Source of the DNA: Auanema rhodensis
Lineage: Eukaryota > Animalia > Nematoda
Assembly: GCA_964057225.1 (NCBI GenBank)
Contig: OZ059897.1
Location: 22,320,001-22,384,000 of the forward strand
Length of the DNA stretch: 64,000 nt
Direction: 5' to 3'
The notes under the pieces were generated by a model that was not told where the DNA came from, did no database searches, and saw only the letters and a list, made by a program, of their open reading frames with translations. The position numbers and the translations under genes were made by a program. The stretch's first letter is position 1. Every line of letters begins with the position of its first letter. Positions 1 through 64,000 of the stretch are shown here, in pieces.

Positions 1-176
1 AAAGATAAAGAGATGCGGTTTTCAAAATTAGATTCCCCATGTCCATATTAGTCTAAAAACAAATTTTTATTGATATTGGTTCATGGTAACCATGACTTTG
101 AAATTTACGTGAACTTTAATTTATGCTAATTAAATGTACACGTGATGTGCACTTGGTATGTAACTCGCTTCACGTG
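1..176 (+). repeat. Consensus-type monomer (176 bp, 56 G+C); putative centromeric or pericentromeric satellite unit
   Basis: Length and composition are seen directly. The centromeric role is inferred from nucleosome-plus-linker unit size, AT richness, very high homogeneity and an array longer than 64 kb. The family is not recognised. Confidence 0.6.
81..95. other. 15-bp dyad TCATGGT-A-ACCATGA present in most monomers (contains the BstEII site GGTNACC; RFX/X-box half-site-like GTTACCATG on the - strand)
   Basis: Perfect 7-bp arms around a single A. Protein binding is not demonstrated. Confidence 0.7.
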
Positions 177-178
177 AA
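135..178. other. Cluster of short palindromes: TGTACA (135-140), CACGTG (139-144), GTGCAC (147-152), TTCACGTGAA (169-178); two canonical E-box/G-box cores per monomer
   Basis: Read directly from monomer 1 and repeated almost without change through the array. Function is unknown. Confidence 0.7.
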
Positions 179-20600: not shown

Positions 20601-21120
20601 AGAGATGCGGTTTTCAAAATTAGATTCCCCATGTCCATATTAGTCTAAAAACAAATTTTTATTGATATTGCTTCATGGTAACCATGACTTTGAAATTTAC
20701 GTGAACTTTAATTTATGCTAATTAAATGTACACGTGATGTGCACTTGGTATGTAACTCGCTTCACGTGAAAGATAAAGAGATGCGGTTTTCAAAATTAGA
20801 TTCCCCATGTCCATATTAGTCTAAAAACAAATTTTTATTGATATTGCTTCATGGTAACCATGACTTTGAAGTTTACGTGAACTTTAATTTATGCTAATTA
20901 AATGTACACGTGATGTGCACTTGGTATGTAACTCGCTTCACGTGAAAGATAAAGAGATGCGGTTTTCAAAATTAGATTCCCCATGTCCATATTAGTCTAA
21001 AAACAAATTTTTATTGATATTGGTTCATGGTAACCATGACTTTGAAATTTACGTAAACTTTAATTTATGCTAATTAAATGTACACGTGATGTGCACTTGG
21101 TATGTAACTCGCTTCACGTG
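14609..21120 (+). repeat. 12/13-monomer higher-order repeat, about 3 copies
   Basis: The diagnostic monomer AAATATAAAGAGATTCGG occurs at 15668, 17956 (+2288 = 13 monomers) and 20068 (+2112 = 12 monomers), with the same ordered flanking variants (GAAATG, GCAG, GTGC, TTTCCC, GCTT, GAAGT). Confidence 0.85.
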
Positions 21121-24100: not shown

Positions 24101-27100
24101 TCGCTTCACGTGAAAGATAAAGAGATGCGGTTTTCAAAATTAGATTCCCCATGTCCATATTAGTCTAAAAACAAATTTTTATTGATATTGCTTCATGGTA
24201 ACCATGACTTTGAAATTTACGTGAACTTTAATTTATGCTAATTAAATGTACACGTGATGTGCACTTGGTATGTAACTCGCTTCACGTGAAAGATAAAGAG
24301 ATGCGGTTTTCAAAATTAGATTCCCCATGTCCATATTAGTCTAAAAACAAATTTTTATTGATATTGGTTCATGGTAACCATGACTTTGAAATTTACGTAA
24401 ACTTTAATTTATGCTAATTAAATGTACACGTGATGTGCACTTGGTATGTAACTCGCTTCACGTGAAAGATAAAGAGATGCGGTTTTCAAAATTAGATTCC
24501 CCATGTCCATATTAGTCTATAAACAAATTTTTATTGATATTGGTTCATGGTAACCATGACTTTGAAGTTTACGTGAACTTTAATTTATGCTAATTAAATG
24601 TACACGTGATGTGCACTTGGTATGTAACTCGCTTCACGTGAAAGATAAAGAGATGCAGTTTTCAAAATTAGATTCCCCATGTCCATATTAGTCTAAAAAC
24701 AAATTTTTATTGATATTGGTGCATGGTAACCATGACTTTGAAATTTACGTGAACTTTAATTTATGCTAATTAAATGTACACGTGATGTGCACTTGGTATG
24801 TAACTCGCTTCACGTGAAAGATAAAGAGATGCGGTTTTCAAAATTAGATTCCCCATGTCCATATTAGTCTAAAAACAAATTTTTATTGATATTGGTTCAT
24901 GGTAACCATGACTTTGAAATTTACGTGAACTTTAATTTATGCTAATTAAATGTACACGTGATGTGCACTTGGTATGTAACTCGCTTCACGTGAAAGATAA
25001 AGAGATGCAGTTTTCAAAATTAGATTCCCCATGTCCATATTAGTCTAAAAACAAATTTTTATTGATATTGGTGCATGGTAACCATGACTTTGAAATTTAC
25101 GTGAACTTTAATTTATGCTAATTAAATGTACACGTGATGTGCACTTGGTATGTAACTCGCTTCACGTGAAAGATAAAGAGATGCGGTTTTCAAAATTAGA
25201 TTCCCCATGTCCATATTAGTCTAAAAACAAATTTTTATTGATATTGCTTCATGGTAACCATGACTTTGAAATTTACGTGAACTTTAATTTATGCTAATTA
25301 AATGTACACGTGATGTGCACTTGGTATGTAACTCGCTTCACGTGAAAGATAAAGAGATGCGGTTTTCAAAATTAGATTCCCCATGTCCATATTAGTCTAA
25401 AAACAAATTTTTATTGATATTGGTTCATGGTAACCATGACTTTGAAATTTACGTGAACTTTAATTTATGCTAATTAAATGTACACGTGATGTGCACTTGG
25501 TATGTAACTCGCTTCACGTGAAAGATAAAGAGATGCGGTTTTCAAAATTAGATTTCCCATGTCCATATTAGTCTAAAAACAAATTTTTATTGATATTGGT
25601 GCATGGTAACCATGACTTTGAAATTTACGTGAACTTTAATTTATGCTAATTAAATGTACACGTGATGTGCACTTGGTATGTAACTCGCTTCACGTGAAAG
25701 ATAAAGAGATGCGGTTTTCAAAATTAGATTCCCCATGTCCATATTAGTCTAAAAACAAATTTTTATTGATATTGCTTCATGGTAACCATGACTTTGAAAT
25801 TTACGTGAACTTTAATTTATGCTAATTAAATGTACACGTGATGTGCACTTGGTATGTAACTCGCTTCACGTGAAAGATAAAGAGATGCGGTTTTCAAAAT
25901 TAGATTCCCCATGTCCATATTAGTCTAAAAACAAATTTTTATTGATATTGCTTCATGGTAACCATGACTTTGAAGTTTACGTGAACTTTAATTTATGCTA
26001 ATTAAATGTACACGTGATGTGCACTTGGTATGTAACTCGCTTCACGTGAAAGATAAAGAGATGCGGTTTTCAAAATTAGATTCCCCATGTCCATATTAGT
26101 CTAAAAACAAATTTTTATTGATATTGGTTCATGGTAACCATGACTTTGAAATTTACGTAAACTTTAATTTATGCTAATTAAATGTACACGTGATGTGCAC
26201 TTGGTATGTAACTCGCTTCACGTGAAAGATAAAGAGATGCGGTTTTCAAAATTAGATTCCCCATGTCCATATTAGTCTATAAACAAATTTTTATTGATAT
26301 TGGTTCATGGTAACCATGACTTTGAAGTTTACGTGAACTTTAATTTATGCTAATTAAATGTACACGTGATGTGCACTTGGTATGTAACTCGCTTCACGTG
26401 AAAGATAAAGAGATGCAGTTTTCAAAATTAGATTCCCCATGTCCATATTAGTCTAAAAACAAATTTTTATTGATATTGGTGCATGGTAACCATGACTTTG
26501 AAATTTACGTGAACTTTAATTTATGCTAATTAAATGTACACGTGATGTGCACTTGGTATGTAACTCGCTTCACGTGAAAGATAAAGAGATGCGGTTTTCA
26601 AAATTAGATTCCCCATGTCCATATTAGTCTAAAAACAAATTTTTATTGATATTGGTTCATGGTAACCATGACTTTGAAATTTACGTGAACTTTAATTTAT
26701 GCTAATTAAATGTACACGTGATGTGCACTTGGTATGTAACTCGCTTCACGTGAAAGATAAAGAGATGCAGTTTTCAAAATTAGATTCCCCATGTCCATAT
26801 TAGTCTAAAAACAAATTTTTATTGATATTGGTGCATGGTAACCATGACTTTGAAATTTACGTGAACTTTAATTTATGCTAATTAAATGTACACGTGATGT
26901 GCACTTGGTATGTAACTCGCTTCACGTGAAAGATAAAGAGATGCGGTTTTCAAAATTAGATTCCCCATGTCCATATTAGTCTAAAAACAAATTTTTATTG
27001 ATATTGCTTCATGGTAACCATGACTTTGAAATTTACGTGAACTTTAATTTATGCTAATTAAATGTACACGTGATGTGCACTTGGTATGTAACTCGCTTCA

Positions 27101-28690
27101 CGTGAAAGATAAAGAGATGCGGTTTTCAAAATTAGATTCCCCATGTCCATATTAGTCTAAAAACAAATTTTTATTGATATTGGTTCATGGTAACCATGAC
27201 TTTGAAATTTACGTAAACTTTAATTTATGCTAATTAAATGTACACGTGATGTGCACTTGGTATGTAACTCGCTTCACGTGAAAGATAAAGAGATGCGGTT
27301 TTCAAAATTAGATTCCCCATGTCCATATTAGTCTATAAACAAATTTTTATTGATATTGGTTCATGGTAACCATGACTTTGAAGTTTACGTGAACTTTAAT
27401 TTATGCTAATTAAATGTACACGTGATGTGCACTTGGTATGTAACTCGCTTCACGTGAAAGATAAAGAGATGCAGTTTTCAAAATTAGATTCCCCATGTCC
27501 ATATTAGTCTAAAAACAAATTTTTATTGATATTGGTGCATGGTAACCATGACTTTGAAATTTACGTGAACTTTAATTTATGCTAATTAAATGTACACGTG
27601 ATGTGCACTTGGTATGTAACTCGCTTCACGTGAAAGATAAAGAGATGCGGTTTTCAAAATTAGATTCCCCATGTCCATATTAGTCTAAAAACAAATTTTT
27701 ATTGATATTGGTTCATGGTAACCATGACTTTGAAATTTACGTGAACTTTAATTTATGCTAATTAAATGTACACGTGATGTGCACTTGGTATGTAACTCGC
27801 TTCACGTGAAAGATAAAGAGATGCAGTTTTCAAAATTAGATTCCCCATGTCCATATTAGTCTAAAAACAAATTTTTATTGATATTGGTGCATGGTAACCA
27901 TGACTTTGAAATTTACGTGAACTTTAATTTATGCTAATTAAATGTACACGTGATGTGCACTTGGTATGTAACTCGCTTCACGTGAAAGATAAAGAGATGC
28001 GGTTTTCAAAATTAGATTCCCCATGTCCATATTAGTCTAAAAACAAATTTTTATTGATATTGCTTCATGGTAACCATGACTTTGAAATTTACGTGAACTT
28101 TAATTTATGCTAATTAAATGTACACGTGATGTGCACTTGGTATGTAACTCGCTTCACGTGAAAGATAAAGAGATGCGGTTTTCAAAATTAGATTCCCCAT
28201 GTCCATATTAGTCTAAAAACAAATTTTTATTGATATTGCTTCATGGTAACCATGACTTTGAAGTTTACGTGAACTTTAATTTATGCTAATTAAATGTACA
28301 CGTGATGTGCACTTGGTATGTAACTCGCTTCACGTGAAAGATAAAGAGATGCGGTTTTCAAAATTAGATTCCCCATGTCCATATTAGTCTAAAAACAAAT
28401 TTTTATTGATATTGGTTCATGGTAACCATGACTTTGAAATTTACGTAAACTTTAATTTATGCTAATTAAATGTACACGTGATGTGCACTTGGTATGTAAC
28501 TCGCTTCACGTGAAAGATAAAGAGATGCGGTTTTCAAAATTAGATTCCCCATGTCCATATTAGTCTATAAACAAATTTTTATTGATATTGGTTCATGGTA
28601 ACCATGACTTTGAAATTTACGTGAACTTTAATTTATGCTAATTAAATGTACACGTGATGTGCACTTGGTATGTAACTCGCTTCACGTGAA
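20945..28690 (+). repeat. Nested 6-mer within 13/16-mer higher-order repeats
   Basis: The ACGTAAAC marker occurs at 21055, 22111, 23343, 24399, 26159, 27215 and 28447 (gaps of 6, 7, 6, 10, 6 and 7 monomers). GCTATTT occurs at 21425 and 23713 (+13 monomers). Confidence 0.8.
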
Positions 28691-42240: not shown

Positions 42241-45200
42241 AAAGATAAAGAGATGCGGTTTTCAAAATTAGATTCCCCATGTCCATATTAGTCTAAAAAC
42301 AAATTTTTATTGATATTGGTTCATGGTAACCATGACTTTGAAATTTACGTGAACTTTAATTTATGCTAATTAAATGTACACGTGATGTGCACTTGGTATG
42401 TAACTCGCTTCACGTGAAAGATAAAGAGATGCGGTTTTCAAAATTAGATTCCCCATGTCCATATTAGTCTAAAAACAAATTTTTATTGATATTGGTTCAT
42501 GGTAACCATGACTTTGAAATTTACGTGAACTTTAATTTATGCTAATTAAATGTACACGTGATGTGCACTTGGTATGTAACTCGCTTCACGTGAAAGATAA
42601 AGAGATGCGGTTTTCAAAATTAGATTCCCCATGTCCATATTAGTCTAAAAACAAATTTTTATTGATATTGCTTCATGGTAACCATGACTTTGAAGTTTAC
42701 GTGAACTTTAATTTATGCTAATTAAATGTACACGTGATGTGCACTTGGTATGTAACTCGCTTCACGTGAAAGATAAAGAGATGCGGTTTTCAAAATTAGA
42801 TTCCCCATGTCCATATTAGTCTAAAAACAAATTTTTATTGATATTGGTTCATGGTAACCATGACTTTGAAATTTACGTAAACTTTAATTTATGCTAATTA
42901 AATGTACACGTGATGTGCACTTGGTATGTAACTCGCTTCACGTGAAAGATAAAGAGATGCGGTTTTCAAAATTAGATTCCCCATGTCCATATTAGTCTAT
43001 AAACAAATTTTTATTGATATTGGTTCATGGTAACCATGACTTTGAAGTTTACGTGAACTTTAATTTATGCTAATTAAATGTACACGTGATGTGCACTTGG
43101 TATGTAACTCGCTTCACGTGAAAGATAAAGAGATGCAGTTTTCAAAATTAGATTCCCCATGTCCATATTAGTCTAAAAACAAATTTTTATTGATATTGGT
43201 GCATGGTAACCATGACTTTGAAATTTACGTGAACTTTAATTTATGCTAATTAAATGTACACGTGATGTGCACTTGGTATGTAACTCGCTTCACGTGAAAG
43301 ATAAAGAGATGCGGTTTTCAAAATTAGATTCCCCATGTCCATATTAGTCTAAAAACAAATTTTTATTGATATTGGTTCATGGTAACCATGACTTTGAAAT
43401 TTACGTGAACTTTAATTTATGCTAATTAAATGTACACGTGATGTGCACTTGGTATGTAACTCGCTTCACGTGAAAGATAAAGAGATGCGGTTTTCAAAAT
43501 TAGATTCCCCATGTCCATATTAGTCTAAAAACAAATTTTTATTGATATTGGTTCATGGTAACCATGACTTTGAAATTTACGTGAACTTTAATTTATGCTA
43601 ATTAAATGTACACGTGATGTGCACTTGGTATGTAACTCGCTTCACGTGAAAGATAAAGAGATGCGGTTTTCAAAATTAGATTCCCCATGTCCATATTAGT
43701 CTAAAAACAAATTTTTATTGATATTGGTTCATGGTAACCATGACTTTGAAATTTACGTAAACTTTAATTTATGCTAATTAAATGTACACGTGATGTGCAC
43801 TTGGTATGTAACTCGCTTCACGTGAAAGATAAAGAGATGCGGTTTTCAAAATTAGATTCCCCATGTCCATATTAGTCTATAAACAAATTTTTATTGATAT
43901 TGGTTCATGGTAACCATGACTTTGAAGTTTACGTGAACTTTAATTTATGCTAATTAAATGTACACGTGATGTGCACTTGGTATGTAACTCGCTTCACGTG
44001 AAAGATAAAGAGATGCAGTTTTCAAAATTAGATTCCCCATGTCCATATTAGTCTAAAAACAAATTTTTATTGATATTGGTGCATGGTAACCATGACTTTG
44101 AAATTTACGTGAACTTTAATTTATGCTAATTAAATGTACACGTGATGTGCACTTGGTATGTAACTCGCTTCACGTGAAAGATAAAGAGATGCGGTTTTCA
44201 AAATTAGATTCCCCATGTCCATATTAGTCTAAAAACAAATTTTTATTGATATTGGTTCATGGTAACCATGACTTTGAAATTTACGTGAACTTTAATTTAT
44301 GCTAATTAAATGTACACGTGATGTGCACTTGGTATGTAACTCGCTTCACGTGAAAGATAAAGAGATGCGGTTTTCAAAATTAGATTCCCCATGTCCATAT
44401 TAGTCTAAAAACAAATTTTTATTGATATTGGTTCATGGTAACCATGACTTTGAAATTTACGTGAACTTTAATTTATGCTAATTAAATGTACACGTGATGT
44501 GCACTTGGTATGTAACTCGCTTCACGTGAAAGATAAAGAGATGCGGTTTTCAAAATTAGATTCCCCATGTCCATATTAGTCTAAAAACAAATTTTTATTG
44601 ATATTGGTTCATGGTAACCATGACTTTGAAATTTACGTGAACTTTAATTTATGCTAATTAAATGTACACGTGATGTGCACTTGGTATGTAACTCGCTTCA
44701 CGTGAAAGATAAAGAGATGCGGTTTTCAAAATTAGATTCCCCATGTCCATATTAGTCTAAAAACAAATTTTTATTGATATTGGTTCATGGTAACCATGAC
44801 TTTGAAATTTACGTGAACTTTAATTTATGCTAATTAAATGTACACGTGATGTGCACTTGGTATGTAACTCGCTTCACGTGAAAGATAAAGAGATGCGGTT
44901 TTCAAAATTAGATTCCCCATGTCCATATTAGTCTAAAAACAAATTTTTATTGATATTGGTTCATGGTAACCATGACTTTGAAATTTACGTGAACTTTAAT
45001 TTATGCTAATTAAATGTACACGTGATGTGCACTTGGTATGTAACTCGCTTCACGTGAAAGAGAAAGAGATGCGGTTTTCAAAATTAGATTCCCCATGTCC
45101 ATATTAGTCTATAAACAAATTTTTATTGATATTGGTTCATGGTAACCATGACTTTGAAATTTACGTGAACTTTAATTTATGCTAATTAAATGTACACGTG

Positions 45201-47320
45201 ATGTGCACTTGGTATGTAACTCGCTTCACGTGAAAGATAAAGAGATGCGGTTTTCAAAATTAGATTCCCCATGTCCATATTAGTCTAAAAACAAATTTTT
45301 ATTGATATTGGTTCATGGTAACCATGACTTTGAAATTTACGTGAACTTTAATTTATGCTAATTAAATGTACACGTGATGTGCACTTGGTATGTAACTCGC
45401 TTCACGTGAAAGATAAAGAGATGCGGTTTTCAAAATTAGATTCCCCATGTCCATATTAGTCTAAAAACAAATTTTTATTGATACTGGTTCATGGTAACCA
45501 TGACTTTGAAATTTACGTGAACTTTAATTTATGCTAATTAAATGTACACGTGATGTGCACTTGGTATGTAACTCGCTTCACGTGAAAGATAAAGAGATGC
45601 GGTTTTCAAAATTAGATTCCCCATGTCCATATTAGTCTATAAACAAATTTTTATTGATATTGGTTCATGGTAACCATGACTTTGAAATTTACGTGAACTT
45701 TAATTTATGCTAATTAAATGTACACGTGATGTGCACTTGGTATGTAACTCGCTTCACGTGAAAGATAAAGAGATGCGGTTTTCAAAATTAGATTCCCCAT
45801 GTCCATATTAGTCTAAAAACAAATTTTTATTGATATTGGTTCATGGTAACCATGACTTTGAAATTTACGTGAACTTTAATTTATGCTAATTAAATGTACA
45901 CGTGATGTGCACTTGGTGTGTAACTCGCTTCACGTGAAAGATAAAGAGATGCAGTTTTCAAAATTAGATTCCCCATGTCCATATTAGTCTAAAAACAAAT
46001 TTTTATTGATATTGGTTCATGGTAACCATGACTTTGAAATTTACGTGAACTTTAATTTATGCTAATTAAATGTACACGTGATGTGCACTTGGTATGTAAC
46101 TCGCTTCACGTGAAAGATAAAGAGATGCGGTTTTCAAAATTAGATTCCCCATGTCCATATTAGTCTAAAAACAAATTTTTATTGATATTGGTGCATGGTA
46201 ACCATGACTTTGAAATTTACGTGAACTTTAATTTATGCTAATTAAATGTACACGTGATGTGCACTTGGTATGTAACTCGCTTCACGTGAAAGATAAAGAA
46301 ATGCGGTTTTCAAAATTAGATTCCCCATGTCCATATTAGTCTAAAAACAAATTTTTATTGATATTGGTTCATGGTAACCATGACTTTGAAATTTACGTGA
46401 ACTTTAATTTATGCTAATTAAATGTACACGTGATGTGCACTTGGTATGTAACTCGCTTCACGTGAAAGATAAAGAGATGCGGTTTTCAAAATTAGATTCC
46501 CCATGTCCATATTAGTCTAAAAACAAATTTTTATTGATATTGGTTCATGGTAACCATGACTTTGAAATTTACGTGAACTTTAATTTATGCTAATTAAATG
46601 TACACGTGATGTGCACTTGGTATGTAACTCGCTTCACGTGAAAGATAAAGAGATGCAGTTTTCAAAATTAGATTCCCCATGTCCATATTAGTCTAAAAAC
46701 AAATTTTTATTGATATTGGTTCATGGTAACCATGACTTTGAAATTTACGTGAACTTTAATTTATGCTAATTAAATGTACACGTGATGTGCACTTGGTATG
46801 TAACTCGCTTCACGTGAAAGATAAAGAGATGCGGTTTTCAAAATTAGATTCCCCATGTCCATATTAGTCTAAAAACAAATTTTTATTGATATTGGTGCAT
46901 GGTAACCATGACTTTGAAATTTACGTGAACTTTAATTTATGCTAATTAAATGTACACGTGATGTGCACTTGGTATGTAACTCGCTTCACGTGAAAGATAA
47001 AGAGATGCGGTTTTCAAAATTAGATTCCCCATGTCCATATTAGTCTATAAACAAATTTTTATTGATATTGGTTCATGGTAACCATGACTTTGAAATTTAC
47101 GTGAACTTTAATTTATGCTAATTAAATGTACACGTGATGTGCACTTGGTATGTAACTCGCTTCACGTGAAAGATGAAGAGATGCGGTTTTCAAAATTAGA
47201 TTCCCCATGTCCATATTAGTCTAAAAACAAATTTTTATTGATACTGGTTCATGGTAACCATGACTTTGAAATTTACGTGAACTTTAATTTATGCTAATTA
47301 AATGTACACGTGATGTGCAC

Positions 47321-47366
47321 TTGGTATGTAACTCGCTTAACGTGAAAGATAAAGAGCGAGTACCAA
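47321..47366. other. Strand-switch (inversion) junction of the satellite array
   Basis: The read is TTGGTATGTAACTCGCTTAACGTGAAAGATAAAG-AG-CGAG-TACCAA. Forward consensus holds to 47356 and reverse consensus starts at 47355 (shared AG). 5 bp (TTACA) of the reverse consensus GCGAGTTACATACC are missing, and there is a C>A change at 47339. Confidence 0.95.
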
Positions 47367-50300
47367 GTGCACATCACGTGTACATTTAATTAGCATAAAT
47401 TAAAGTTCACGTAAATTTCAAAGTCATGGTTACCATGAACCAATATCACGAAAAATTTGTTTTTAGACTAATATGGACATGGGGAATCTAATTTTGAGAA
47501 CCGCATCTCTTTATCTTTCACGTGAAGCGAGTTACATACCAAGTGCACATCACGTGTACATTTAATTAGCATAAATTAAAGTTCACGTAAATTTCAAAGT
47601 CATGGTTACCATGCACCAATATCAATAAAAATTTGTTTTTAGACTAATATGGACATGGGGAATCTAATTTTGAAAACCGCATCTCTTTATCTTTCACGTG
47701 AAGCGAGTTACATACCAAGTGCACATCACGTGTACATTTAATTAGCATAAATTAAAGTTCACGTAAACTTCAAAGTCATGGTTACCATGAACCAATATCA
47801 ATAAAAATTTGTTTATAGACTAATATGGACATGGGGAATCTAATTTTGAAAACCGCATCTCTTTATCTTTCACGTGAAGCGAGTTACATACCAAGTGCAC
47901 ATCACGTGTACATTTAATTAGCATAAATTAAAGTTCACGTAAATTTCAAAGTCATGGTTACCATGAACCAGTATCAATAAAAATTTGTTTTTAGACTAAT
48001 ATGGACATGGGGAATCTAATTTTGAAAACCGCATCTCTTTATCTTTCACGTGAAGCGAGTTACATACCAAGTGCACATCACGTGTACATTTAATTAGCAT
48101 AAATTAAAGTTCACGTAAATTTCAAAGTCATGGTTACCATGAACCAATATCAATAAAAATTTGTTTTTAGACTAATATGGACATGGGGAATCTAATTTTG
48201 AAAACCGCATCTCTTTATCTTTCACGTGAAGCGAGTTACATACCAAGTGCACATCACGTGTACATTTAATTAGCATAAATTAAAGTTCACGTAAATTTCA
48301 AAGTCATGGTTACCATGAACCAATATCAATAAAAATTTGTTTATAGACTAATATGGACATGGGGAATCTAATTTTGAAAACCGCATCTCTTTATCTTTCA
48401 CGTGAAGCGAGTTACATACCAAGTGCACATCACGTGTACATTTAATTAGCATAAATTAAAGTTCACGTAAATTTCAAAGTCATGGTTACCATGAACCAAT
48501 ATCAATAAAAATTTGTTTTTAGACTAATATGGACATGGGGAATCTAATTTTGAAAACCGCATCTCTTTATCTTTCACGTGAAGCGAGTTACATACCAAGT
48601 GCACATCACGTGTACATTTAATTAGCATAAATTAAAGTTCACGTAAATTTCAAAATCATGGTTACCATGAACCAATATCAATAAAAATTTGTTTTTAGAC
48701 TAATATGGACATGGGGAATCTAATTTTGAAAACCGCATCTCTTTATCTTTCACGTGAAGCGAGTTACATACCAAGTGCACATCACGTGTACATTTAATTA
48801 GCATAAATTAAAGTTCACGTAAATTTCAAAGTCATGGTTACCATGAACCAATATCAATAAAAATTTGTTTTTAGACTAATATGGACATGGGGAATCTAAT
48901 TTTGAAAACCGCATCTCTTTATCTTTCACGTGAAGCGAGTTACATACCAAGTGCACATCACGTGTACATTTAATTAGCATAAATTAAAGTTCACGTAAAT
49001 TTCAAAGTCATGGTTACCATGAACCAATATCAATAAAAATTTGTTTTTAGACTAATATGGACATGGGGAATCTAATTTTGAAAACCGCATCTCTTTATCT
49101 TTCACGTGAAGCGAGTTACATACCAAGTGCACATCACGTGTACATTTAATTAGCATAAATTAAAGTTCACGTAAATTTCAAAGTCATGGTTACCATGAAC
49201 CAATATCAAAAAAAATTTGTTTTTAGACTAATATGGACATGGGGAATCTAATTTTGAAGACCGCATCTCTTTATCTTTCACGTGAAGCGAGTTACATACC
49301 AAGTGCACATCACGTGTACATTTAATTAGCATAAATTAAAGTTCACGTAAATTTCAAAGTCATGGTTACCATGCACCAATATCAATAAAAATTTGTTTTT
49401 AGACTAATATGGACATGGGGAATCTAATTTTGAAAACTGCATCTCTTTATCTTTCACGTGAAGCGAGTTACATACCAAGTGCACATCACGTGTACATTTA
49501 ATTAGCATAAATTAAAGTTCACGTAAACTTCAAAGTCATGGTTACCATGAACCAATATCAATAAAAATTTGTTTATAGACTAATATGGACATGGGGAATC
49601 TAATTTTGAAAACCGCATCTCTTCATCTTTCACGTGAAGCGAGTTACATACCAAGTGCACATCACGTGTACATTTAATTAGCATAAATTAAAGTTTACGT
49701 AAATTTCAAAGTCATGGTTACCATGAACCAATATCAATAAAAATTTGTTTTTAGACTAATATGGACATGGGGAATCTAATTTTGAAAACCGCATCTCTTT
49801 ATCTTTCACGTGAAGCGAGTTACATACCAAGTGCACATCACGTGTACATTTAATTAGCATAAATTAAAGTTCACGTAAACTTCAAAGTCATGGTTACCAT
49901 GAAGCAATATCAATAAAAATTTGTTTTTAGACTAATATGGACATGGGGAATCTAATTTTGAAAACCGCATCTCTTTATCTTTCACGTGAAGTGAGTTACA
50001 TACCAAGTGCACATCACGTGTACATTTAATTAGCATAAATTAAAGTTTACGTAAATTTCAAAGTCATGGTTACCATGAACCAATATCAATAAAAATTTGT
50101 TTTTAGACTAATATGGACATGGGGAATCTAATTTTAAAAACCGCATCTCTTTATCTTTCACGTGAAGCGAGTTACATACCAAGTGCACATCACGTGTACA
50201 TTTAATTAGCATAAATTAAAGTTCACGTAAACTTCAAAGTCATGGTTACCATGAAGCAATATCAATAAAAATTTGTTTTTAGACTAATATGGACATGGGG

Positions 50301-53300
50301 AATCTAATTTTGAAAACCGCATCTCTTTATCTTTCACGTGAAGCGAGTTACATACCAAGTGCACATCACGTGTACATTTAATTAGCATAAATTAAAGTTC
50401 ACGTAAACTTCAAAGTCATGGTTACCATGAAGCAATATCAATAAAAATTTGTTTTTAGACTAATATGGACATGGGGAATCTAATTTTGAAAACCGCATCT
50501 CTTTATCTTTCACGTGAAGCGAGTTACATACCAAGTGCACATCACGTGTACATTTAATTAGCATAAATTAAAGTTCACGTAAATTTCAAAGTCATGGTTA
50601 CCATGCACCAATATCAATAAAAATTTGTTTTTAGACTAATATGGACATGGGGAATCTAATTTTGAAAACTGCATCTCTTTATCTTTCACGTGAAGCGAGT
50701 TACATACCAAGTGCACATCACGTGTACATTTAATTAGCATAAATTAAAGTTCACGTAAACTTCAAAGTCATGGTTACCATGAACCAATATCAATAAAAAT
50801 TTGTTTATAGACTAATATGGACATGGGGAATCTAATTTTGAAAACCGCATCTCTTTATCTTTCACGTGAAGCGAGTTACATACCAAGTGCACATCACGTG
50901 TACATTTAATTAGCATAAATTAAAGTTTACGTAAATTTCAAAGTCATGGTTACCATGAACCAATATCAATAAAAATTTGTTTTTAGACTAATATGGACAT
51001 GGGGAATCTAATTTTGAAAACCGCATCTCTTTATCTTTCACGTGAAGCGAGTTACATACCAAGTGCACATCACGTGTACATTTAATTAGCATAAATTAAA
51101 GTTCACGTAAATTTCAAAGAGATGGTTACCATGAACCAATATCAATAAAAATTTGTTTTTAGACTAATATGGACATGGGGAATCTAATTTTGAAAACTGC
51201 ATCTCTTTATCTTTCACGTGAAGCGAGTTACATACCAAGTGCACATCACGTGTACATTTAATTAGCATAAATTAAAGTTCACGTAAATTTCAAAGTCATG
51301 GTTACCATGAACCAATATCAATAAAAATTTGTTTTTCGACTAATATGGACATGGGGAATCTAATTTTGAAAACCGCATCTCTTTATCTTTCACGTGAAGC
51401 GAGTTACATACCAAGTGCACATCACGTGTACATTTAATTAGCATAAATTAAAGTTCACGTAAATTTCAAAGTCATGGTTACCATGAACCAATATCAATAA
51501 AAATTTGTTTTTAGACTAATATGGACATGGGGAATCTAATTTTGAAAACCGCATCTCTTTATCTTTCACGTGAAGCGAGTTACATACCAAGTGCACATCA
51601 CGTGTACATTTAATTAGCATAAATTAAAGTTCACGTAAATTTCAAAGTCATGGTTACCATGAACCAATATCAATAAAAATTTGTTTTTAGACTAATATGG
51701 ACATGGGGAATCTAATTTTGAAAACCGCATTTCTTTATCTTTCACGTGAAGCGAGTTACATACCAAGTGCACATCACGTGTACATTTAATTAGCATAAAT
51801 TAAAGTTCACGTAAATTTCAAAGTCATGGTTACCATGCACCAATATCAATAAAAATTTGTTTTTAGACTAATATGGACATGGGGAATCTAATTTTGAAAA
51901 CCGCATCTCTTTATCTTTCACGTGAAGCGAGTTACATACCAAGTGCACATCACGTGTACATTTAATTAGCATAAATTAAAGTTCACGTAAATTTCAAAGT
52001 CATGGTTACCATGAACCAATATCAATAAAAATTTGTTTTTAGACTAATATGGACATGGGGAATCTAATTTTGAAAACTGCATCTCTTTATCTTTCACGTG
52101 AAGCGAGTTACACACCAAGTGCACATCACGTGTACATTTAATTAGCATAAATTAAAGTTCACGTAAATTTCAAAGTCATGGTTACCATGAACCAATATCA
52201 ATAAAAATTTGTTTTTAGACTAATATGGACATGGGGAATCTAATTTTGAAAACCGCATCTCTTTATCTTTCACGTGAAGCGAGTTACATACCAAGTGCAC
52301 ATCACGTGTACATTTAATTAGCATAAATTAAAGTTCACGTAAATTTCAAAGTCATGGTTACCATGAACCAATATCAATAAAAATTTGTTTATAGACTAAT
52401 ATGGACATGGGGAATCTAATTTTGAAAACCGCATCTCTTTATCTTTCACGTGAAGCGAGTTACATACCAAGTGCACATCACGTGTACATTTAATTAGCAT
52501 AAATTAAAGTTCACGTAAATTTCAAAGTCATGGTTACCATGAACCAGTATCAATAAAAATTTGTTTTTAGACTAATATGGACATGGGGAATCTAATTTTG
52601 AAAACCGCATCTCTTTATCTTTCACGTGAAGCGAGTTACATACCAAGTGCACATCACGTGTACATTTAATTAGCATAAATTAAAGTTCACGTAAATTTCA
52701 AAGTCATGGTTACCATGAACCAATATCAATAAAAATTTGTTTTTAGACTAATATGGACATGGGGAATCTAATTTTGAAAACCGCATCTCTTTATCTTTCA
52801 CGTGAAGCGAGTTACATACCAAGTGCACATCACGTGTACATTTAATTAGCATAAATTAAAGTTCACGTAAATTTCAAAGTCATGGTTACCATGAACCAAT
52901 ATCAATAAAAATTTGTTTATAGACTAATATGGACATGGGGAATCTAATTTTGAAAACCGCATCTCTTTATCTTTCACGTGAAGCGAGTTACATACCAAGT
53001 GCACATCACGTGTACATTTAATTAGCATAAATTAAAGTTCACGTAAATTTCAAAGTCATGGTTACCATGCACCAATATCAATAAAAATTTGTTTTTAGAC
53101 TAATATGGACATGGGGAATCTAATTTTGAAAACCGCATCTCTTTATCTTTCACGTGAAGCGAGTTACATACCAAGTGCACATCACGTGTACATTTAATTA
53201 GCATAAATTAAAGTTCACGTAAATTTCAAAGTCATGGTTACCATGAACCAATATCAATAAAAATTTGTTTTTAGACTAATATGGACATGGGGAATCTAAT

Positions 53301-56300
53301 TTTGAAAACTGCATCTCTTTATCTTTCACGTGAAGCGAGTTACATACCAAGTGCACATCACGTGTACATTTAATTAGCATAAATTAAAGTTCACGTAAAT
53401 TTCAAAGTCATGGTTACCATGAACCAATATCAATAAAAATTTGTTTTTAGACTAATATGGACATGGGGAATCTAATTTTGAAAACCGCATCTCTTTATCT
53501 TTCACGTGAAGCGAGTTACATACCAAGTGCACATCACGTGTACATTTAATTAGCATAAATTAAAGTTCACGTAAATTTCAAAGTCATGGTTACCATGAAC
53601 CAATATCAATAAAAATTTGTTTTTAGACTAATATGGACATGGGGAATCTAATTTTGAAAACCGCATTTCTTTATCTTTCACGTGAAGCGAGTTACATACC
53701 AAGTGCACATCACGTGTACATTTAATTAGCATAAATTAAAGTTCACGTAAATTTCAAAGTCATGGTTACCATGCACCAATATCAATAAAAATTTGTTTTT
53801 AGACTAATATGGACATGGGGAATCTAATTTTGAAAACCGCATCTCTTTATCTTTCACGTGAAGCGAGTTACATACCAAGTGCACATCACGTGTACATTTA
53901 ATTAGCATAAATTAAAGTTCACGTAAATTTCAAAGTCATGGTTACCATGAACCAATATCAATAAAAATTTGTTTTTAGACTAATATGGACATGGGGAATC
54001 TAATTTTGAAAACTGCATCTCTTTATCTTTCACGTGAAGCGAGTTACACACCAAGTGCACATCACGTGTACATTTAATTAGCATAAATTAAAGTTCACGT
54101 AAATTTCAAAGTCATGGTTACCATGAACCAATATCAATAAAAATTTGTTTTTAGACTAATATGGACATGGGGAATCTAATTTTGAAAACCGCATCTCTTT
54201 ATCTTTCACGTGAAGCGAGTTACATACCAAGTGCACATCACGTGTACATTTAATTAGCATAAATTAAAGTTCACGTAAATTTCAAAGTCATGGTTACCAT
54301 GAACCAATATCAATAAAAATTTGTTTATAGACTAATATGGACATGGGGAATCTAATTTTGAAAACCGCATCTCTTTATCTTTCACGTGAAGCGAGTTACA
54401 TACCAAGTGCACATCACGTGTACATTTAATTAGCATAAATTAAAGTTCACGTAAATTTCAAAGTCATGGTTACCATGAACCAGTATCAATAAAAATTTGT
54501 TTTTAGACTAATATGGACATGGGGAATCTAATTTTGAAAACCGCATCTCTTTATCTTTCACGTGAAGCGAGTTACATACCAAGTGCACATCACGTGTACA
54601 TTTAATTAGCATAAATTAAAGTTCACGTAAATTTCAAAGTCATGGTTACCATGAACCAATATCAATAAAAATTTGTTTTTAGACTAATATGGACATGGGG
54701 AATCTAATTTTGAAAACCGCATCTCTTTATCTTTCACGTGAAGCGAGTTACATACCAAGTGCACATCACATGTACATTTAATTAGCATAAATTAAAGTTC
54801 ACGTAAATTTCAAAGTCATGGTTACCATGAACCAATATCAATAAAAATTTGTTTATAGACTAATATGGACATGGGGAATCTAATTTTGAAAACCGCATCT
54901 CTTTATCTTTCACGTGAAGCGAGTTACATACCAAGTGCACATCACGTGTACATTTAATTAGCATAAATTAAAGTTCACGTAAATTTCAAAGTCATGGTTA
55001 CCATGAACCAATATCAATAAAAATTTGTTTTTAGACTAATATGGACATGGGGAATCTAATTTTGAAAACCGCATCTCTTTATCTTTCACGTGAAGCGAGT
55101 TACATACCAAGTGCACATCACGTGTACATTTAATTAGCATAAATTAAAGTTCACGTAAATTTCAAAGTCATGGTTACCATGAACCAATATCAATAAAAAT
55201 TTGTTTTTAGACTAATATGGACATGGGGAATCTAATTTTGAAAACCGCATCTCTTTATCTTTCACGTGAAGCGAGTTACATACCAAGTGCACATCACGTG
55301 TACATTTAATTAGCATAAATTAAAGTTCACGTAAATTTCAAAGTCATGGTTACCATGAACCAATATCAATAAAAATTTGTTTTTAGACTAATATGGACAT
55401 GGGGAATCTAATTTTGAAAACCGCATCTCTTTATCTTTCACGTGAAGCGAGTTACATACCAAGTGCACATCACGTGTACATTTAATTAGCATAAATTAAA
55501 GTTCACGTAAATTTCAAAGTCATGGTTACCATGAACCAATATCAATAAAAATTTGTTTTTAGACTAATATGGACATGGGGAATCTAATTTTGAAAACCGC
55601 ATCTCTTTATCTTTCACGTGAAGCGAGTTACATACCAAGTGCACATCACGTGTACATTTAATTAGCATAAATTAAAGTTCACGTAAATTTCAAAGTCATG
55701 GTTACCATGAACCAATATCAATAAAAATTTGTTTTTAGACTAATATGGACATGGGGAATCTAATTTTGAAAACCGCATCTCTTTATCTTTCACGTGAAGC
55801 GAGTTACATACCAAGTGCACATCACGTGTACATTTAATTAGCATAAATTAAAGTTCACGTAAATTTCAAAGTCATGGTTACCATGCACCAATATCAATAA
55901 AAATTTGTTTTTAGACTAATATGGACATGGGGAATCTAATTTTGAAAACTGCATCTCTTTATCTTTCACGTGAAGCGAGTTACATACCAAGTGCACATCA
56001 CGTGTACATTTAATTAGCATAAATTAAAGTTCACGTAAACTTCAAAGTCATGGTTACCATGAACCAATATCAATAAAAATTTGTTTATAGACTAATATGG
56101 ACATGGGGAATCTAATTTTGAAAACCGCATCTCTTTATCTTTCACGTGAAGCGAGTTACATACCAAGTGCACATCACGTGTACATTTCATTAGCATAAAT
56201 TAAAGTTTACGTAAATTTCAAAGTCATGGTTACCATGAACCAATATCAATAAAAATTTGTTTTTAGACTAATATGGACATGGGGAATCTAATTTTGAAAA

Positions 56301-59300
56301 CCGCATCTCTTTATCTTTCACGTGAAGCGAGTTACATACCAAGTGCACATCACGTGTACATTTAATTAGCATAAATTAAAGTTTACGTAAATTTCAAAGT
56401 CATGGTTACCATGAAGCAATATCAATAAAAATTTGTTTTTAGACTAATATGGACATGGGGAATCTAATTTTGAAAACCGCATCTCTTTATCTTTCACGTG
56501 AAGCGAGTTACATACCAAGTGCACATCACGTGTACATTTAATTAGCATAAATTAAAGTTCACGTAAATTTCAAAGTCATGGTTACCATGAACCAATATCA
56601 ATAAAAATTTGTTTTTAGACTAATATGGACATGGGGAATCTAATTTTGAAAACCGCATCTCTTTATCTTTCACGTGAAGCGAGTTACATACCAAGTGCAC
56701 ATCACGTGTACATTTAATTAGCATAAATTAAAGTTCACGTAAATTTCAAAGTCATGGTTACCATGCACCAATATCAATAAAAATTTGTTTTTAGACTAAT
56801 ATGGACATGGGGAATCTAATTTTGAAAACTGCATCTCTTTATCTTTCACGTGAAGCGAGTTACATACCAAGTGCACATCACGTGTACATTTAATTAGCAT
56901 AAATTAAAGTTCACGTAAACTTCAAAGTCATGGTTACCATGAACCAATATCAATAAAAATTTGTTTATAGACTAATATGGACATGGGGAATCTAATTTTG
57001 AAAACCGCATCTCTTTATCTTTCACGTGAAGCGAGTTACATACCAAGTGCACATCACGTGTACATTTAATTAGCATAAATTAAAGTTCACGTAAACTTCA
57101 AAGTCATGGTTACCATGAACCAATATCAATAAAAATTTGTTTATAGACTAATATGGACATGGGGAATCTAATTTTGAAAACCGCATCTCTTTATCTTTCA
57201 CGTGAAGCGAGTTACATACCAAGTGCACATCACGTGTACATTTAATTAGCATAAATTAAAGTTCACGTAAATTTCAAAGTCATGGTTACCATGAACCAGT
57301 ATCAATAAAAATTTGTTTTTAGACTAATATGGACATGGGGAATCTAATTTTGAAAACCGCATCTCTTTATCTTTCACGTGAAGCGAGTTACATACCAAGT
57401 GCACATCACGTGTACATTTAATTAGCATAAATTAAAGTTCACGTAAATTTCAAAGTCATGGTTACCATGAACCAATATCAATAAAAATTTGTTTTTAGAC
57501 TAATATGGACATGGGGAATCTAATTTTGAAAACCGCATCTCTTTATCTTTCACGTGAAGCGAGTTACATACCAAGTGCACATCACGTGTACATTTAATTA
57601 GCATAAATTAAAGTTCACGTAAATTTCAAAGTCATGGTTACCATGAACCAATATCAATAAAAATTTGTTTATAGACTAATATGGACATGGGGAATCTAAT
57701 TTTGAAAACCGCATCTCTTTATCTTTCACGTGAAGCGAGTTACATACCAAGTGCACATCACGTGTACATTTAATTAGCATAAATTAAAGTTCACGTAAAT
57801 TTCAAAGTCATGGTTACCATGAACCAATATCAATAAAAATTTGTTTTTAGACTAATATGGACATGGGGAATCTAATTTTGAAAACCGCATCTCTTTATCT
57901 TTCACGTGAAGCGAGTTACATACCAAGTGCACATCACGTGTACATTTAATTAGCATAAATTAAAGTTCACGTAAATTTCAAAATCATGGTTACCATGAAC
58001 CAATATCAATAAAAATTTGTTTTTAGACTAATATGGACATGGGGAATCTAATTTTGAAAACCGCATCTCTTTATCTTTCACGTGAAGCGAGTTACATACC
58101 AAGTGCACATCACGTGTACATTTAATTAGCATAAATTAAAGTTCACGTAAATTTCAAAGTCATGGTTACCATGAACCAATATCAATAAAAATTTGTTTTT
58201 AGACTAATATGGACATGGGGAATCTAATTTTGAAAACCGCATCTCTTTATCTTTCACGTGAAGCGAGTTACATACCAAGTGCACATCACGTGTACATTTA
58301 ATTAGCATAAATTAAAGTTCACGTAAATTTCAAAGTCATGGTTACCATGAACCAATATCAATAAAAATTTGTTTTTAGACTAATATGGACATGGGGAATC
58401 TAATTTTGAAAACCGCATCTCTTTATCTTTCACGTGAAGCGAGTTACATACCAAGTGCACATCACGTGTACATTTAATTAGCATAAATTAAAGTTCACGT
58501 AAATTTCAAAGTCATGGTTACCATGAACCAATATCAAAAAAAATTTGTTTTTAGACTAATATGGACATGGGGAATCTAATTTTGAAGACCGCATCTCTTT
58601 ATCTTTCACGTGAAGCGAGTTACATACCAAGTGCACATCACGTGTACATTTAATTAGCATAAATTAAAGTTCACGTAAATTTCAAAGTCATGGTTACCAT
58701 GCACCAATATCAATAAAAATTTGTTTTTAGACTAATATGGACATGGGGAATCTAATTTTGAAAACTGCATCTCTTTATCTTTCACGTGAAGCGAGTTACA
58801 TACCAAGTGCACATCACGTGTACATTTAATTAGCATAAATTAAAGTTCACGTAAACTTCAAAGTCATGGTTACCATGAACCAATATCAATAAAAATTTGT
58901 TTATAGACTAATATGGACATGGGGAATCTAATTTTGAAAACCGCATCTCTTCATCTTTCACGTGAAGCGAGTTACATACCAAGTGCACATCACGTGTACA
59001 TTTAATTAGCATAAATTAAAGTTTACGTAAATTTCAAAGTCATGGTTACCATGAACCAATATCAATAAAAATTTGTTTTTAGACTAATATGGACATGGGG
59101 AATCTAATTTTGAAAACCGCATCTCTTTATCTTTCACGTGAAGCGAGTTACATACCAAGTGCACATCACGTGTACATTTAATTAGCATAAATTAAAGTTC
59201 ACGTAAACTTCAAAGTCATGGTTACCATGAAGCAATATCAATAAAAATTTGTTTTTAGACTAATATGGACATGGGGAATCTAATTTTGAAAACCGCATCT

Positions 59301-62300
59301 CTTTATCTTTCACGTGAAGTGAGTTACATACCAAGTGCACATCACGTGTACATTTAATTAGCATAAATTAAAGTTTACGTAAATTTCAAAGTCATGGTTA
59401 CCATGAACCAATATCAATAAAAATTTGTTTTTAGACTAATATGGACATGGGGAATCTAATTTTAAAAACCGCATCTCTTTATCTTTCACGTGAAGCGAGT
59501 TACATACCAAGTGCACATCACGTGTACATTTAATTAGCATAAATTAAAGTTCACGTAAACTTCAAAGTCATGGTTACCATGAAGCAATATCAATAAAAAT
59601 TTGTTTTTAGACTAATATGGACATGGGGAATCTAATTTTGAAAACCGCATCTCTTTATCTTTCACGTGAAGCGAGTTACATACCAAGTGCACATCACGTG
59701 TACATTTAATTAGCATAAATTAAAGTTCACGTAAACTTCAAAGTCATGGTTACCATGAAGCAATATCAATAAAAATTTGTTTTTAGACTAATATGGACAT
59801 GGGGAATCTAATTTTGAAAACCGCATCTCTTTATCTTTCACGTGAAGCGAGTTACATACCAAGTGCACATCACGTGTACATTTAATTAGCATAAATTAAA
59901 GTTCACGTAAATTTCAAAGTCATGGTTACCATGCACCAATATCAATAAAAATTTGTTTTTAGACTAATATGGACATGGGGAATCTAATTTTGAAAACTGC
60001 ATCTCTTTATCTTTCACGTGAAGCGAGTTACATACCAAGTGCACATCACGTGTACATTTAATTAGCATAAATTAAAGTTCACGTAAACTTCAAAGTCATG
60101 GTTACCATGAACCAATATCAATAAAAATTTGTTTATAGACTAATATGGACATGGGGAATCTAATTTTGAAAACCGCATCTCTTTATCTTTCACGTGAAGC
60201 GAGTTACATACCAAGTGCACATCACGTGTACATTTAATTAGCATAAATTAAAGTTTACGTAAATTTCAAAGTCATGGTTACCATGAACCAATATCAATAA
60301 AAATTTGTTTTTAGACTAATATGGACATGGGGAATCTAATTTTGAAAACCGCATCTCTTTATCTTTCACGTGAAGCGAGTTACATACCAAGTGCACATCA
60401 CGTGTACATTTAATTAGCATGAATTAAAGTTCACGTAAATTTCAAAGAGATGGTTACCATGAACCAATATCAATAAAAATTTGTTTTTAGACTAATATGG
60501 ACATGGGGAATCTAATTTTGAAAACTGCATCTCTTTATCTTTCACGTGAAGCGAGTTACATACCAAGTGCACATCACGTGTACATTTAATTAGCATAAAT
60601 TAAAGTTCACGTAAATTTCAAAGTCATGGTTACCATGAACCAATATCAATAAAAATTTGTTTTTAGACTAATATGGACATGGGGAATCTAATTTTGAAAA
60701 CCGCATCTCTTTATCTTTCACGTGAAGCGAGTTACATACCAAGTGCACATCACGTGTACATTTAATTAGCATAAATTAAAGTTCACGTAAATTTCAAAGT
60801 CATGGTTACCATGAACCAATATCAATAAAAATTTGTTTTTAGACTAATATGGACATGGGGAATCTAATTTTGAAAACCGCATTTCTTTATCTTTCACGTG
60901 AAGCGAGTTACATACCAAGTGCACATCACGTGTACATTTAATTAGCATAAATTAAAGTTCACGTAAATTTCAAAGTCATGGTTACCATGCACCAATATCA
61001 ATAAAAATTTGTTTTTAGACTAATATGGACATGGGGAATCTAATTTTGAAAACCGCATCTCTTTATCTTTCACGTGAAGCGAGTTACATACCAAGTGCAC
61101 ATCACGTGTACATTTAATTAGCATAAATTAAAGTTCACGTAAATTTCAAAGTCATGGTTACCATGAACCAATATCAATAAAAATTTGTTTTTAGACTAAT
61201 ATGGACATGGGGAATCTAATTTTGAAAACTGCATCTCTTTATCTTTCACGTGAAGCGAGTTACATACCAAGTGCACATCACGTGTACATTTAATTAGCAT
61301 AAATTAAAGTTCACGTAAATTTCAAAGTCATGGTTACCATGAACCAATATCAATAAAAATTTGTTTATAGACTAATATGGACATGGGGAATCTAATTTTG
61401 AAAACCGCATCTCTTTATCTTTCACGTGAAGCGAGTTACATACCAAGTGCACATCACGTGTACATTTAATTAGCATAAATTAAAGTTCACGTAAATTTCA
61501 AAGTCATGGTTACCATGAACCAGTATCAATAAAAATTTGTTTTTAGACTAATATGGACATGGGGAATCTAATTTTGAAAACCGCATCTCTTTATCTTTCA
61601 CGTGAAGCGAGTTACATACCAAGTGCACATCACGTGTACATTTAATTAGCATAAATTAAAGTTCACGTAAATTTCAAAGTCATGGTTACCATGAACCAAT
61701 ATCAATAAAAATTTGTTTTTAGACTAATATGGACATGGGGAATCTAATTTTGAAAACCGCATCTCTTTATCTTTCACGTGAAGCGAGTTACATACCAAGT
61801 GCACATCACGTGTACATTTAATTAGCATAAATTAAAGTTCACGTAAATTTCAAAGTCATGGTTACCATGAACCAATATCAATAAAAATTTGTTTATAGAC
61901 TAATATGGACATGGGGAATCTAATTTTGAAAACCGCATCTCTTTATCTTTCACGTGAAGCGAGTTACATACCAAGTGCACATCACGTGTACATTTAATTA
62001 GCATAAATTAAAGTTCACGTAAATTTCAAAGTCATGGTTACCATGCACCAATATCAATAAAAATTTGTTTTTAGACTAATATGGACATGGGGAATCTAAT
62101 TTTGAAAACCGCATCTCTTTATCTTTCACGTGAAGCGAGTTACATACCAAGTGCACATCACGTGTACATTTAATTAGCATAAATTAAAGTTCACGTAAAT
62201 TTCAAAGTCATGGTTACCATGAACCAATATCAATAAAAATTTGTTTTTAGACTAATATGGACATGGGGAATCTAATTTTGAAAACTGCATCTCTTTATCT

Positions 62301-64000
62301 TTCACGTGAAGCGAGTTACATACCAAGTGCACATCACGTGTACATTTAATTAGCATAAATTAAAGTTCACGTAAATTTCAAAGTCATGGTTACCATGAAC
62401 CAATATCAATAAAAATTTGTTTTTAGACTAATATGGACATGGGGAATCTAATTTTGAAAACCGCATCTCTTTATCTTTCACGTGAAGCGAGTTACATACC
62501 AAGTGCACATCACGTGTACATTTAATTAGCATAAATTAAAGTTCACGTAAATTTCAAAGTCATGGTTACCATGAACCAATATCAATAAAAATTTGTTTTT
62601 AGACTAATATGGACATGGGGAATCTAATTTTGAAAACCGCATTTCTTTATCTTTCACGTGAAGCGAGTTACATACCAAGTGCACATCACGTGTACATTTA
62701 ATTAGCATAAATTAAAGTTCACGTAAATTTCAAAGTCATGGTTACCATGCACCAATATCAATAAAAATTTGTTTTTAGACTAATATGGACATGGGGAATC
62801 TAATTTTGAAAACCGCATCTCTTTATCTTTCACGTGAAGCGAGTTACATACCAAGTGCACATCACGTGTACATTTAATTAGCATAAATTAAAGTTCACGT
62901 AAATTTCAAAGTCATGGTTACCATGAACCAATATCAATAAAAATTTGTTTTTAGACTAATATGGACATGGGGAATCTAATTTTGAAAACTGCATCTCTTT
63001 ATCTTTCACGTGAAGCGAGTTACACACCAAGTGCACATCACGTGTACATTTAATTAGCATAAATTAAAGTTCACGTGAATTTCAAAGTCATGGTTACCAT
63101 GAACCAATATCAATAAAAATTTGTTTTTAGACTAATATGGACATGGGGAATCTAATTTTGAAAACCGCATCTCTTTATCTTTCACGTGAAGCGAGTTACA
63201 TACCAAGTGCACATCACGTGTACATTTAATTAGCATAAATTAAAGTTCACGTAAATTTCAAAGTCATGGTTACCATGAACCAATATCAATAAAAATTTGT
63301 TTATAGACTAATATGGACATGGGGAATCTAATTTTGAAAACCGCATCTCTTTATCTTTCACGTGAAGCGAGTTACATACCAAGTGCACATCACGTGTACA
63401 TTTAATTAGCATAAATTAAAGTTCACGTAAATTTCAAAGTCATGGTTACCATGAACCAGTATCAATAAAAATTTGTTTTTAGACTAATATGGACATGGGG
63501 AATCTAATTTTGAAAACCGCATCTCTTTATCTTTCACGTGAAGCGAGTTACATACCAAGTGCACATCACGTGTACATTTAATTAGCATAAATTAAAGTTC
63601 ACGTAAATTTCAAAGTCATGGTTACCATGAACCAATATCAATAAAAATTTGTTTTTAGACTAATATGGACATGGGGAATCTAATTTTGAAAACCGCATCT
63701 CTTTATCTTTCACGTGAAGCGAGTTACATACCAAGTGCACATCACATGTACATTTAATTAGCATAAATTAAAGTTCACGTAAATTTCAAAGTCATGGTTA
63801 CCATGAACCAATATCAATAAAAATTTGTTTATAGACTAATATGGACATGGGGAATCTAATTTTGAAAACCGCATCTCTTTATCTTTCACGTGAAGCGAGT
63901 TACATACCAAGTGCACATCACGTGTACATTTAATTAGCATAAATTAAAGTTCACGTAAATTTCAAAGTCATGGTTACCATGAACCAATATCAATAAAAAT
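47357..64000 (-). repeat. Same 176-bp satellite, reverse-complement arm (about 94.5 monomers; continues off the right edge)
   Basis: The sequence reads TACCAAGTGCACATCACGTGTACATTTAATTAGC..., the reverse complement of the monomer. Phase is kept at 47361, 48241, 50881, 53521, 56161, 58801 and 61441 (all multiples of 176 apart). Confidence 0.99.
47700..64000 (-). repeat. About 9.0-9.3 kb (51-53 monomer offset) segmental duplication within the reverse arm
   Basis: Private variants pair at +9328: 48655/57983, 49210/58538, 49259/58587, 49624/58952, 49992/59320, 50136/59464 and 51120/60448. The offset is then +9152 (51731/60883) and +8976 (54770/63746). Confidence 0.9.

Follow-up and report, generated by a model that had tools for sequence, protein, structure and literature searches.

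Where does the reverse-oriented part of this satellite array come from? The window, by which we mean the whole 64-kb stretch of DNA that was analysed (1-64000), changes strand once, at 47356/47361, and a first-pass annotation had proposed that the reverse arm begins as a long-range copy of the first monomers of the window itself. We consider it somewhat probable that the strand switch marks a young inverted duplication inside the satellite AT-1, in which 46 kb separates the two copies and the junction is of the fold-back type. Such a duplication is a known kind of rearrangement, whereas the description of the satellite that carries it is recent.

A single satellite array with one change of strand

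The whole 64 kb consisted of a single AT-rich satellite (32% GC) with a unit of 176 bp. A forward array (1-47356, + strand) and a reverse array (47361-64000, - strand), both arranged head to tail, were separated by the only strand switch in the window, TRF ending the former at 47356 and starting the latter at 47361. Anchored on the monomer start, 269 forward and 94 reverse monomers were counted, and all 363 were spaced exactly 176 bp apart, with no single-base insertion or deletion among them. Thus, variation in the array took the form of substitutions or of whole monomers. We distinguished 67 monomer types and 64 variant sites, at about 1.17 changes per monomer relative to the consensus. The sole exception to length change by whole units (176 bp) in the window (1-64000) was a loss of 5 nt at the junction.

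At about 20200-27500 (forward monomers 116-155), the array contained nested multi-monomer repeats with a shifting period, and a block of 14 monomer types recurred there at an offset of 13 monomers. Blocks recurring at offsets of 12 and 8 monomers were also seen, at about monomers 167-188 and 222-237.

AT-1 is an autosome-terminal repeat that is eliminated from the somatic cells of Auanema rhodense; the satellite spans many megabases, and a 28-nt FISH probe has been published for it under the name AT-1 (A-elim) (bioRxiv 10.64898/2026.08.27.747507). This probe had 354 exact matches in the window, against 0 expected. The class to which AT-1 belongs comprises tandem units of 167-504 nt that form multi-megabase blocks at autosome ends and are lost from the soma; the unit in the window was 176 bp and strictly periodic over 64 kb, the unit length of AT-1 itself being absent from the text of that paper. 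Judged by its sequence, the window is AT-1 satellite of A. rhodense. No Rfam family matched in 46500-48700.

An exact inverted copy 46 kb away

The reverse complement of 47361-48574 was identical to 1-1214, with 0 mismatches in 1214 nt and a coordinate sum of 48575 (Table 1). The first-pass annotation had read the first seven reverse monomers as mirror images of forward monomers 7 to 1 with this same sum, and 1214 of the 1214 positions agreed. Its estimate that the partner lies about 262 monomers upstream was also right, the two copies being about 46.1 kb apart. The exact identity ended at 1214/47361. When 263 in-phase forward registers were scanned, the runner-up had 8 mismatches, most registers had 14-18 and the mode was 16. 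No second match of this quality exists in the window, and chance does not account for it; such a unique, exact inverted identity of 1214 nt counts in favour of an inverted duplication. In the assembly, the layout of a direct copy, a spacer and an inverted copy is present.

Table 1. Positions and strands of the features around the strand switch and of the macro-repeat copies
Feature	Positions	Strand	Description	Basis
Forward partner	1-1214	+	Monomers 1-6, then monomer 7 up to its position 158	
TGTAA	1215-1219	+	Monomer positions 159-163, lost from the inverted copy	1215-1240 compared with 47335-47360
CTCGCT	1220-1225	+	Monomer positions 164-169, mirrored as AGCGAG at 47355-47360	
Spacer between the copies	1226-47344	+	About 262 forward monomers without indels, containing nested multi-monomer repeats	
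Forward tail beside the junction	42880-47174	+	Macro-repeat paralogue, mirrored at 52793-57087	
Last 12 nt of the forward array	47345-47356	+	AAAGATAAAGAG, monomer positions 1-12	
CGAG	47357-47360	-	In neither TRF array; reverse-oriented satellite, monomer positions 167-164	
Inverted copy of 1-1214	47361-48574	-	Exact reverse-complement identity	
Junction-proximal macro-repeat copy	47361-54734	-	Ends in monomers A, e	Monomer strings and alignment
Distal macro-repeat copy	54735-63886	-	G E in place of the proximal A e	

In terms of monomer types, the forward arm started with. H. J G A e, and the reverse arm, read forward, ended with. H. J G A and then 158 nt of e. Type e, which is monomer 7, combines 21T>C, 69A>C and 70T>G and was found in two of the 363 monomers, at these two places only. 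Two words specific to it, GGTTCTCA (1073/47495) and TTTTCGTG (1121/47447), occurred once per strand. The earlier statement that the monomer-7 variants are seen nowhere else was thus borne out within the window; type e was counted in the window, further copies elsewhere in the genome are possible, and this counts against the duplication. The variants that had been cited for the mirror were real, but their coordinates deviated by a few bases. The forward coordinate of TTTTCGTG was wrong by about 20, the changed bases being 1125-1126 and not 1105-1106. The other cited variants were indeed mirrored but were too common to be distinctive (GGTGC 51+13, GAAGT 34+14, CTATAA 17+18 and ATACTGG 3+6 occurrences).

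Anatomy of the junction

In terms of the consensus monomer, the junction is a classic snap-back. As single-stranded DNA, 47290-47397 folds into a hairpin of -47.2 kcal/mol (z = -14), with a 36-bp stem, a 5-nt bulge, a 7-bp stem and a 17-nt loop, and CGAG lies in the inner stem. This near-perfect hairpin counts in favour of an inverted duplication. At the level of variants, a local fold-back is excluded. A copy folded back locally would pair 47361-48574 with 46113-47326, and this comparison gave 15 mismatches over the 1214 nt, a number at background level, against 0 for the distant partner. The discriminating positions follow the distant partner already within about 90 nt of the junction. The annotation was therefore correct in denying a simple local hairpin fold-back.

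The final AG of the forward array (47355-47356) can be read from either side. On the forward strand, CTCG and CTCGCT each occur once per monomer, solely at position 164. Since CTCG(CT) has only this one place, 164-169, in the monomer, the CGAG that follows the forward array is reverse-oriented satellite. The reverse arm therefore effectively starts at monomer position 167-169, skips 159-163 and resumes at 158. The inverted homology shared at the join is AG, and AGCGAG is the reverse complement of 1220-1225, offset by the 5-nt loss. That CGAG can come only from a reverse-oriented monomer, 5 nt beyond the end of the copy, also counts for the duplication.

One true singleton, 171C>A, was found beside the junction. 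It is at 47339, 21 nt before the junction and in the loop of the hairpin, and it may be part of a repair scar or may be unrelated. A single singleton was too little to speak of clustered mutation beside the junction.

How specific the pairing is

The reverse arm consisted of two tandem copies of a macro-repeat of 53 monomers (9328 bp). These two copies differed by 3 nt over 39 aligned monomers (0.44 changes per kb) and by a few whole-monomer indels. Exact repeats of 1-3.5 kb were common in the window. According to our own exact-repeat script, direct exact repeats reached 3453 bp, the longest pairing 47640-51092 with 56968-60420 within the macro-repeat of the reverse arm, and there were inverted exact repeats of 1977, 1594, 1407, 1308 and 1282 bp, all longer than 1214 bp. 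As similar or longer exact repeats are so common, 100% identity is unexceptional here, and this has to be counted against the inverted duplication.

Positions 1-935 were mirrored exactly a second time, at 56968-57902. What links the junction-proximal copy specifically to 1-1214 is therefore confined to monomers 6-7 (types A and e), and the discriminating sequence for the pairing comes to about 330 nt, a further point against the duplication. A boundary of JG with Ae was common to the forward arm and the proximal copy, whereas the distal copy reads JG followed by GE. The link between the two places is thus a shared structural breakpoint, beyond mere membership of the same repeat family, and the presence of the private monomer e and of this boundary at both places counts in favour of an inverted duplication.

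Inverted repeats in cis exchange sequence by conversion. Gene conversion between the inverted arms could therefore have patched 1-1214 onto an older arm with no new junction, and the small discriminating part of the pairing, monomers 6-7 alone, would suit such a patch. However, the end of such a conversion tract would need to coincide exactly with the strand switch, and the pairing of two places 262 monomers apart would be left unexplained. The register scan rules out a chance match, as does the rarity of type e, which accounts for 2 of 363 monomers. We regard conversion or chance as very improbable indeed.

A second mirror pair was found closer to the junction. The forward tail at 42880-47174 and its counterpart at 52793-57087 had 5 mismatches in 4295 nt, with a diagonal sum of 99967 and a spacer of 5.6 kb, and the exact 1977-bp core of this pair was at 45198-47174. 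Together with the two reverse copies, this forward tail, which differs by only about 1.2 changes per kb, makes at least three copies of the macro-repeat in the window.

These copies bear on a different origin of the strand switch, namely a plain inversion whose far end lies in a paralogous copy of the macro-repeat. The array would first have held two direct ...d.H.JGAe.f.g... blocks through a large tandem segmental duplication; breaks after monomer 7 of the forward tail and inside the second e would then have placed the second copy, reversed, beside 47360. Young multi-monomer duplications abound in the array, the macro-repeat is present in at least three copies with the little-diverged forward tail among them, and 0 differences in 1214 nt are compatible with the 0.44 changes per kb between the reverse copies. 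An inversion of this kind fits everything in the window. It needs two events, however, a large direct duplication and then the inversion, where one suffices, and a second forward JGAe copy was not seen among the 269 forward monomers. We regard this origin as unlikely.

Forward monomers 1-5 proved to be the tail of the macro-repeat family of the reverse arm. Some mirror-like similarity upstream of the window is therefore expected under most readings, and for the same reason the upstream DNA would probably look mirror-like under the inversion of a paralogous copy as well. Three words had been proposed as private anchors with which such an upstream mirror might be recognized. They turned out not to be private: each was present twice in the reverse arm, because this arm is a tandem duplicate of the 53-monomer unit. 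In forward orientation, the anchor words at 48651, 49255 and 51116 were absent from 1-47360, and the variants of 48575-64000 had no forward counterpart there. If the remainder of this arm has a donor, its place is outside the window.

Read support and the assembly

The genome was built from HiFi reads with hifiasm 0.16.1, at about 29-fold coverage in the repeat blocks (bioRxiv 10.64898/2026.08.27.747507). Thousands of Logan contigs covered 47240-47505, but with lengths of about 50-60 nt they were too short to bridge 47356-47361. Between 47339 and 47356 their depth, which is not a copy number, dropped about 30-fold; contig ends left loose at 47356 continued as normal monomer. The Logan contigs thus neither supported nor refuted the junction. 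That no read or contig was shown to bridge 47356-47361 (the contigs being about 50-60 nt long) is counted against the inverted duplication.

The junction could be an artefact if a chimeric HiFi read, or a wrong walk through the hifiasm graph, had joined 47356 to the reverse complement of sequence that exists in a single copy. Coverage of only about 29-fold in repeat regions, the use of hifiasm 0.16.1 and the fact that no Logan contig supported the junction are in keeping with such an error, although contigs of 50-60 nt could not have bridged it anyway. The junction contained no Ns, which rules out a scaffolding join. A palindromic read with a missing adapter would mirror the sequence that adjoins the junction, and this mirror was absent here. 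A random ligation chimera should seldom unite sequences only 46 kb apart when tens of megabases of the same satellite are on offer, and a partner at so short a distance in a satellite of many megabases would favour a cis event over a random chimera. A string-graph assembler would not normally use one set of reads twice within a contig, once in each orientation. In addition, the 5-nt loss and the microhomology resemble repair and not ligation. An assembly artefact therefore seems to us quite unlikely.

Possible origin of the inverted duplication

Taking the assembly to be correct here, we infer a mechanism and a direction of copying for the inverted duplication, and the mirror would be expected to continue left of the window. 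The forward stretch that ends at about 1214-1225 would be present again, reversed, from the strand switch at 47356/47361. The join is a non-homologous one, made of 2 shared nucleotides (AG), 4 nt of reverse-oriented satellite and then the 5-nt loss. Two routes might lead to it. In a single event, a 3' end left broken or stalled at 47356 might prime on the opposite strand by microhomology, and this end would then copy, or be end-joined to, the sister or a copy on the same strand 262 monomers back. In two events, a local fold-back at monomer e might come first, and an in-register unequal exchange would later put 262 monomers between e and the junction. Gain or loss of whole monomers is the usual mode of change in the array, which bears on the second route. 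The two routes are inseparable on the present evidence.

Comparison with known systems

Human fold-back inverted duplications consist of a direct copy, a spacer of 766-70,466 bp and an inverted copy, with 2-8 bp of inverted microhomology; the spacers have a median of 3.4 kb, and 20 of the 21 are shorter than 15 kb (Hermetz et al. 2014, PMC3907307). The locus studied here has the same layout and a short inverted microhomology at the junction of the spacer and the inverted copy, which speaks for the inverted duplication, and its 46-kb spacer falls within that range. A 46-kb loop is nevertheless at the upper end of the reported fold-back spacers, and we counted this against the inverted duplication. 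The human cases also differ in that they occur in unique DNA next to terminal deletions, whereas the present one is embedded in a single homogeneous satellite whose monomers all provide the same microhomology.

In the germ cells of Caenorhabditis elegans, end joining by polymerase theta leaves scars that show short homology at the join, a small deletion and an insert templated by flanking sequence (van Schendel et al. 2015, PMC4490562). The junction resembles these scars in its very short homology, its deletion of a few bases and its few inserted bases that match nearby sequence. However, the polymerase-theta scars are small deletions at single breaks, while here the join creates an inverted copy on the kilobase scale. 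An accidental match of the 4 inserted bases to the flanks has a chance of about 1 in 25, and 4 bases are too few for a firm assignment to polymerase theta.

Complete assemblies of plant and human centromeres have shown that long satellite arrays contain strand switches, inversions and multi-monomer (higher-order) duplications. The array in the window is likewise homogeneous, has nested multi-monomer repeats and changes orientation abruptly without a transposon. Unlike those arrays, AT-1 is not centromeric, and here one exact marker block is present in both orientations, at places far apart.

If the inverted duplication is real, the locus would be a dated, base-resolved example of rearrangement in a germline-restricted satellite, with a long spacer and a junction of the repair type. 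Together with other strand switches, it could help to ask which repair pathway shapes eliminated DNA. Taken alone, it is an ordinary structural variant within a repeat, with no bearing on genes. A wider conjecture, which we hold to be distinctly improbable, is that germline-only AT-1 arrays grow and reshuffle largely by repeated break-induced copying with switches of strand and register; the locus would then be a long-range example, in which a switch of 262 monomers was seeded by a local snap-back. In that case, the many strand switches in these arrays would be traces of a systematic process linked to DNA that the soma never needs, and this could help to account for the growth of satellite to nearly two thirds of the genome.

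Short-range features of the monomer

Short open reading frames of 34 and 30 codons recurred in each unit, for example at 123-227 (+) and 130-222 (-); neither was recorded as a called gene, and they are probably meaningless. A palindromic elimination motif has been described for A. rhodense. Every monomer in the window had built-in palindromes, for example at 85-99 and 136-153, which included TCATGGT-A-ACCATGA, CACGTG (two per unit) and GTGCAC.
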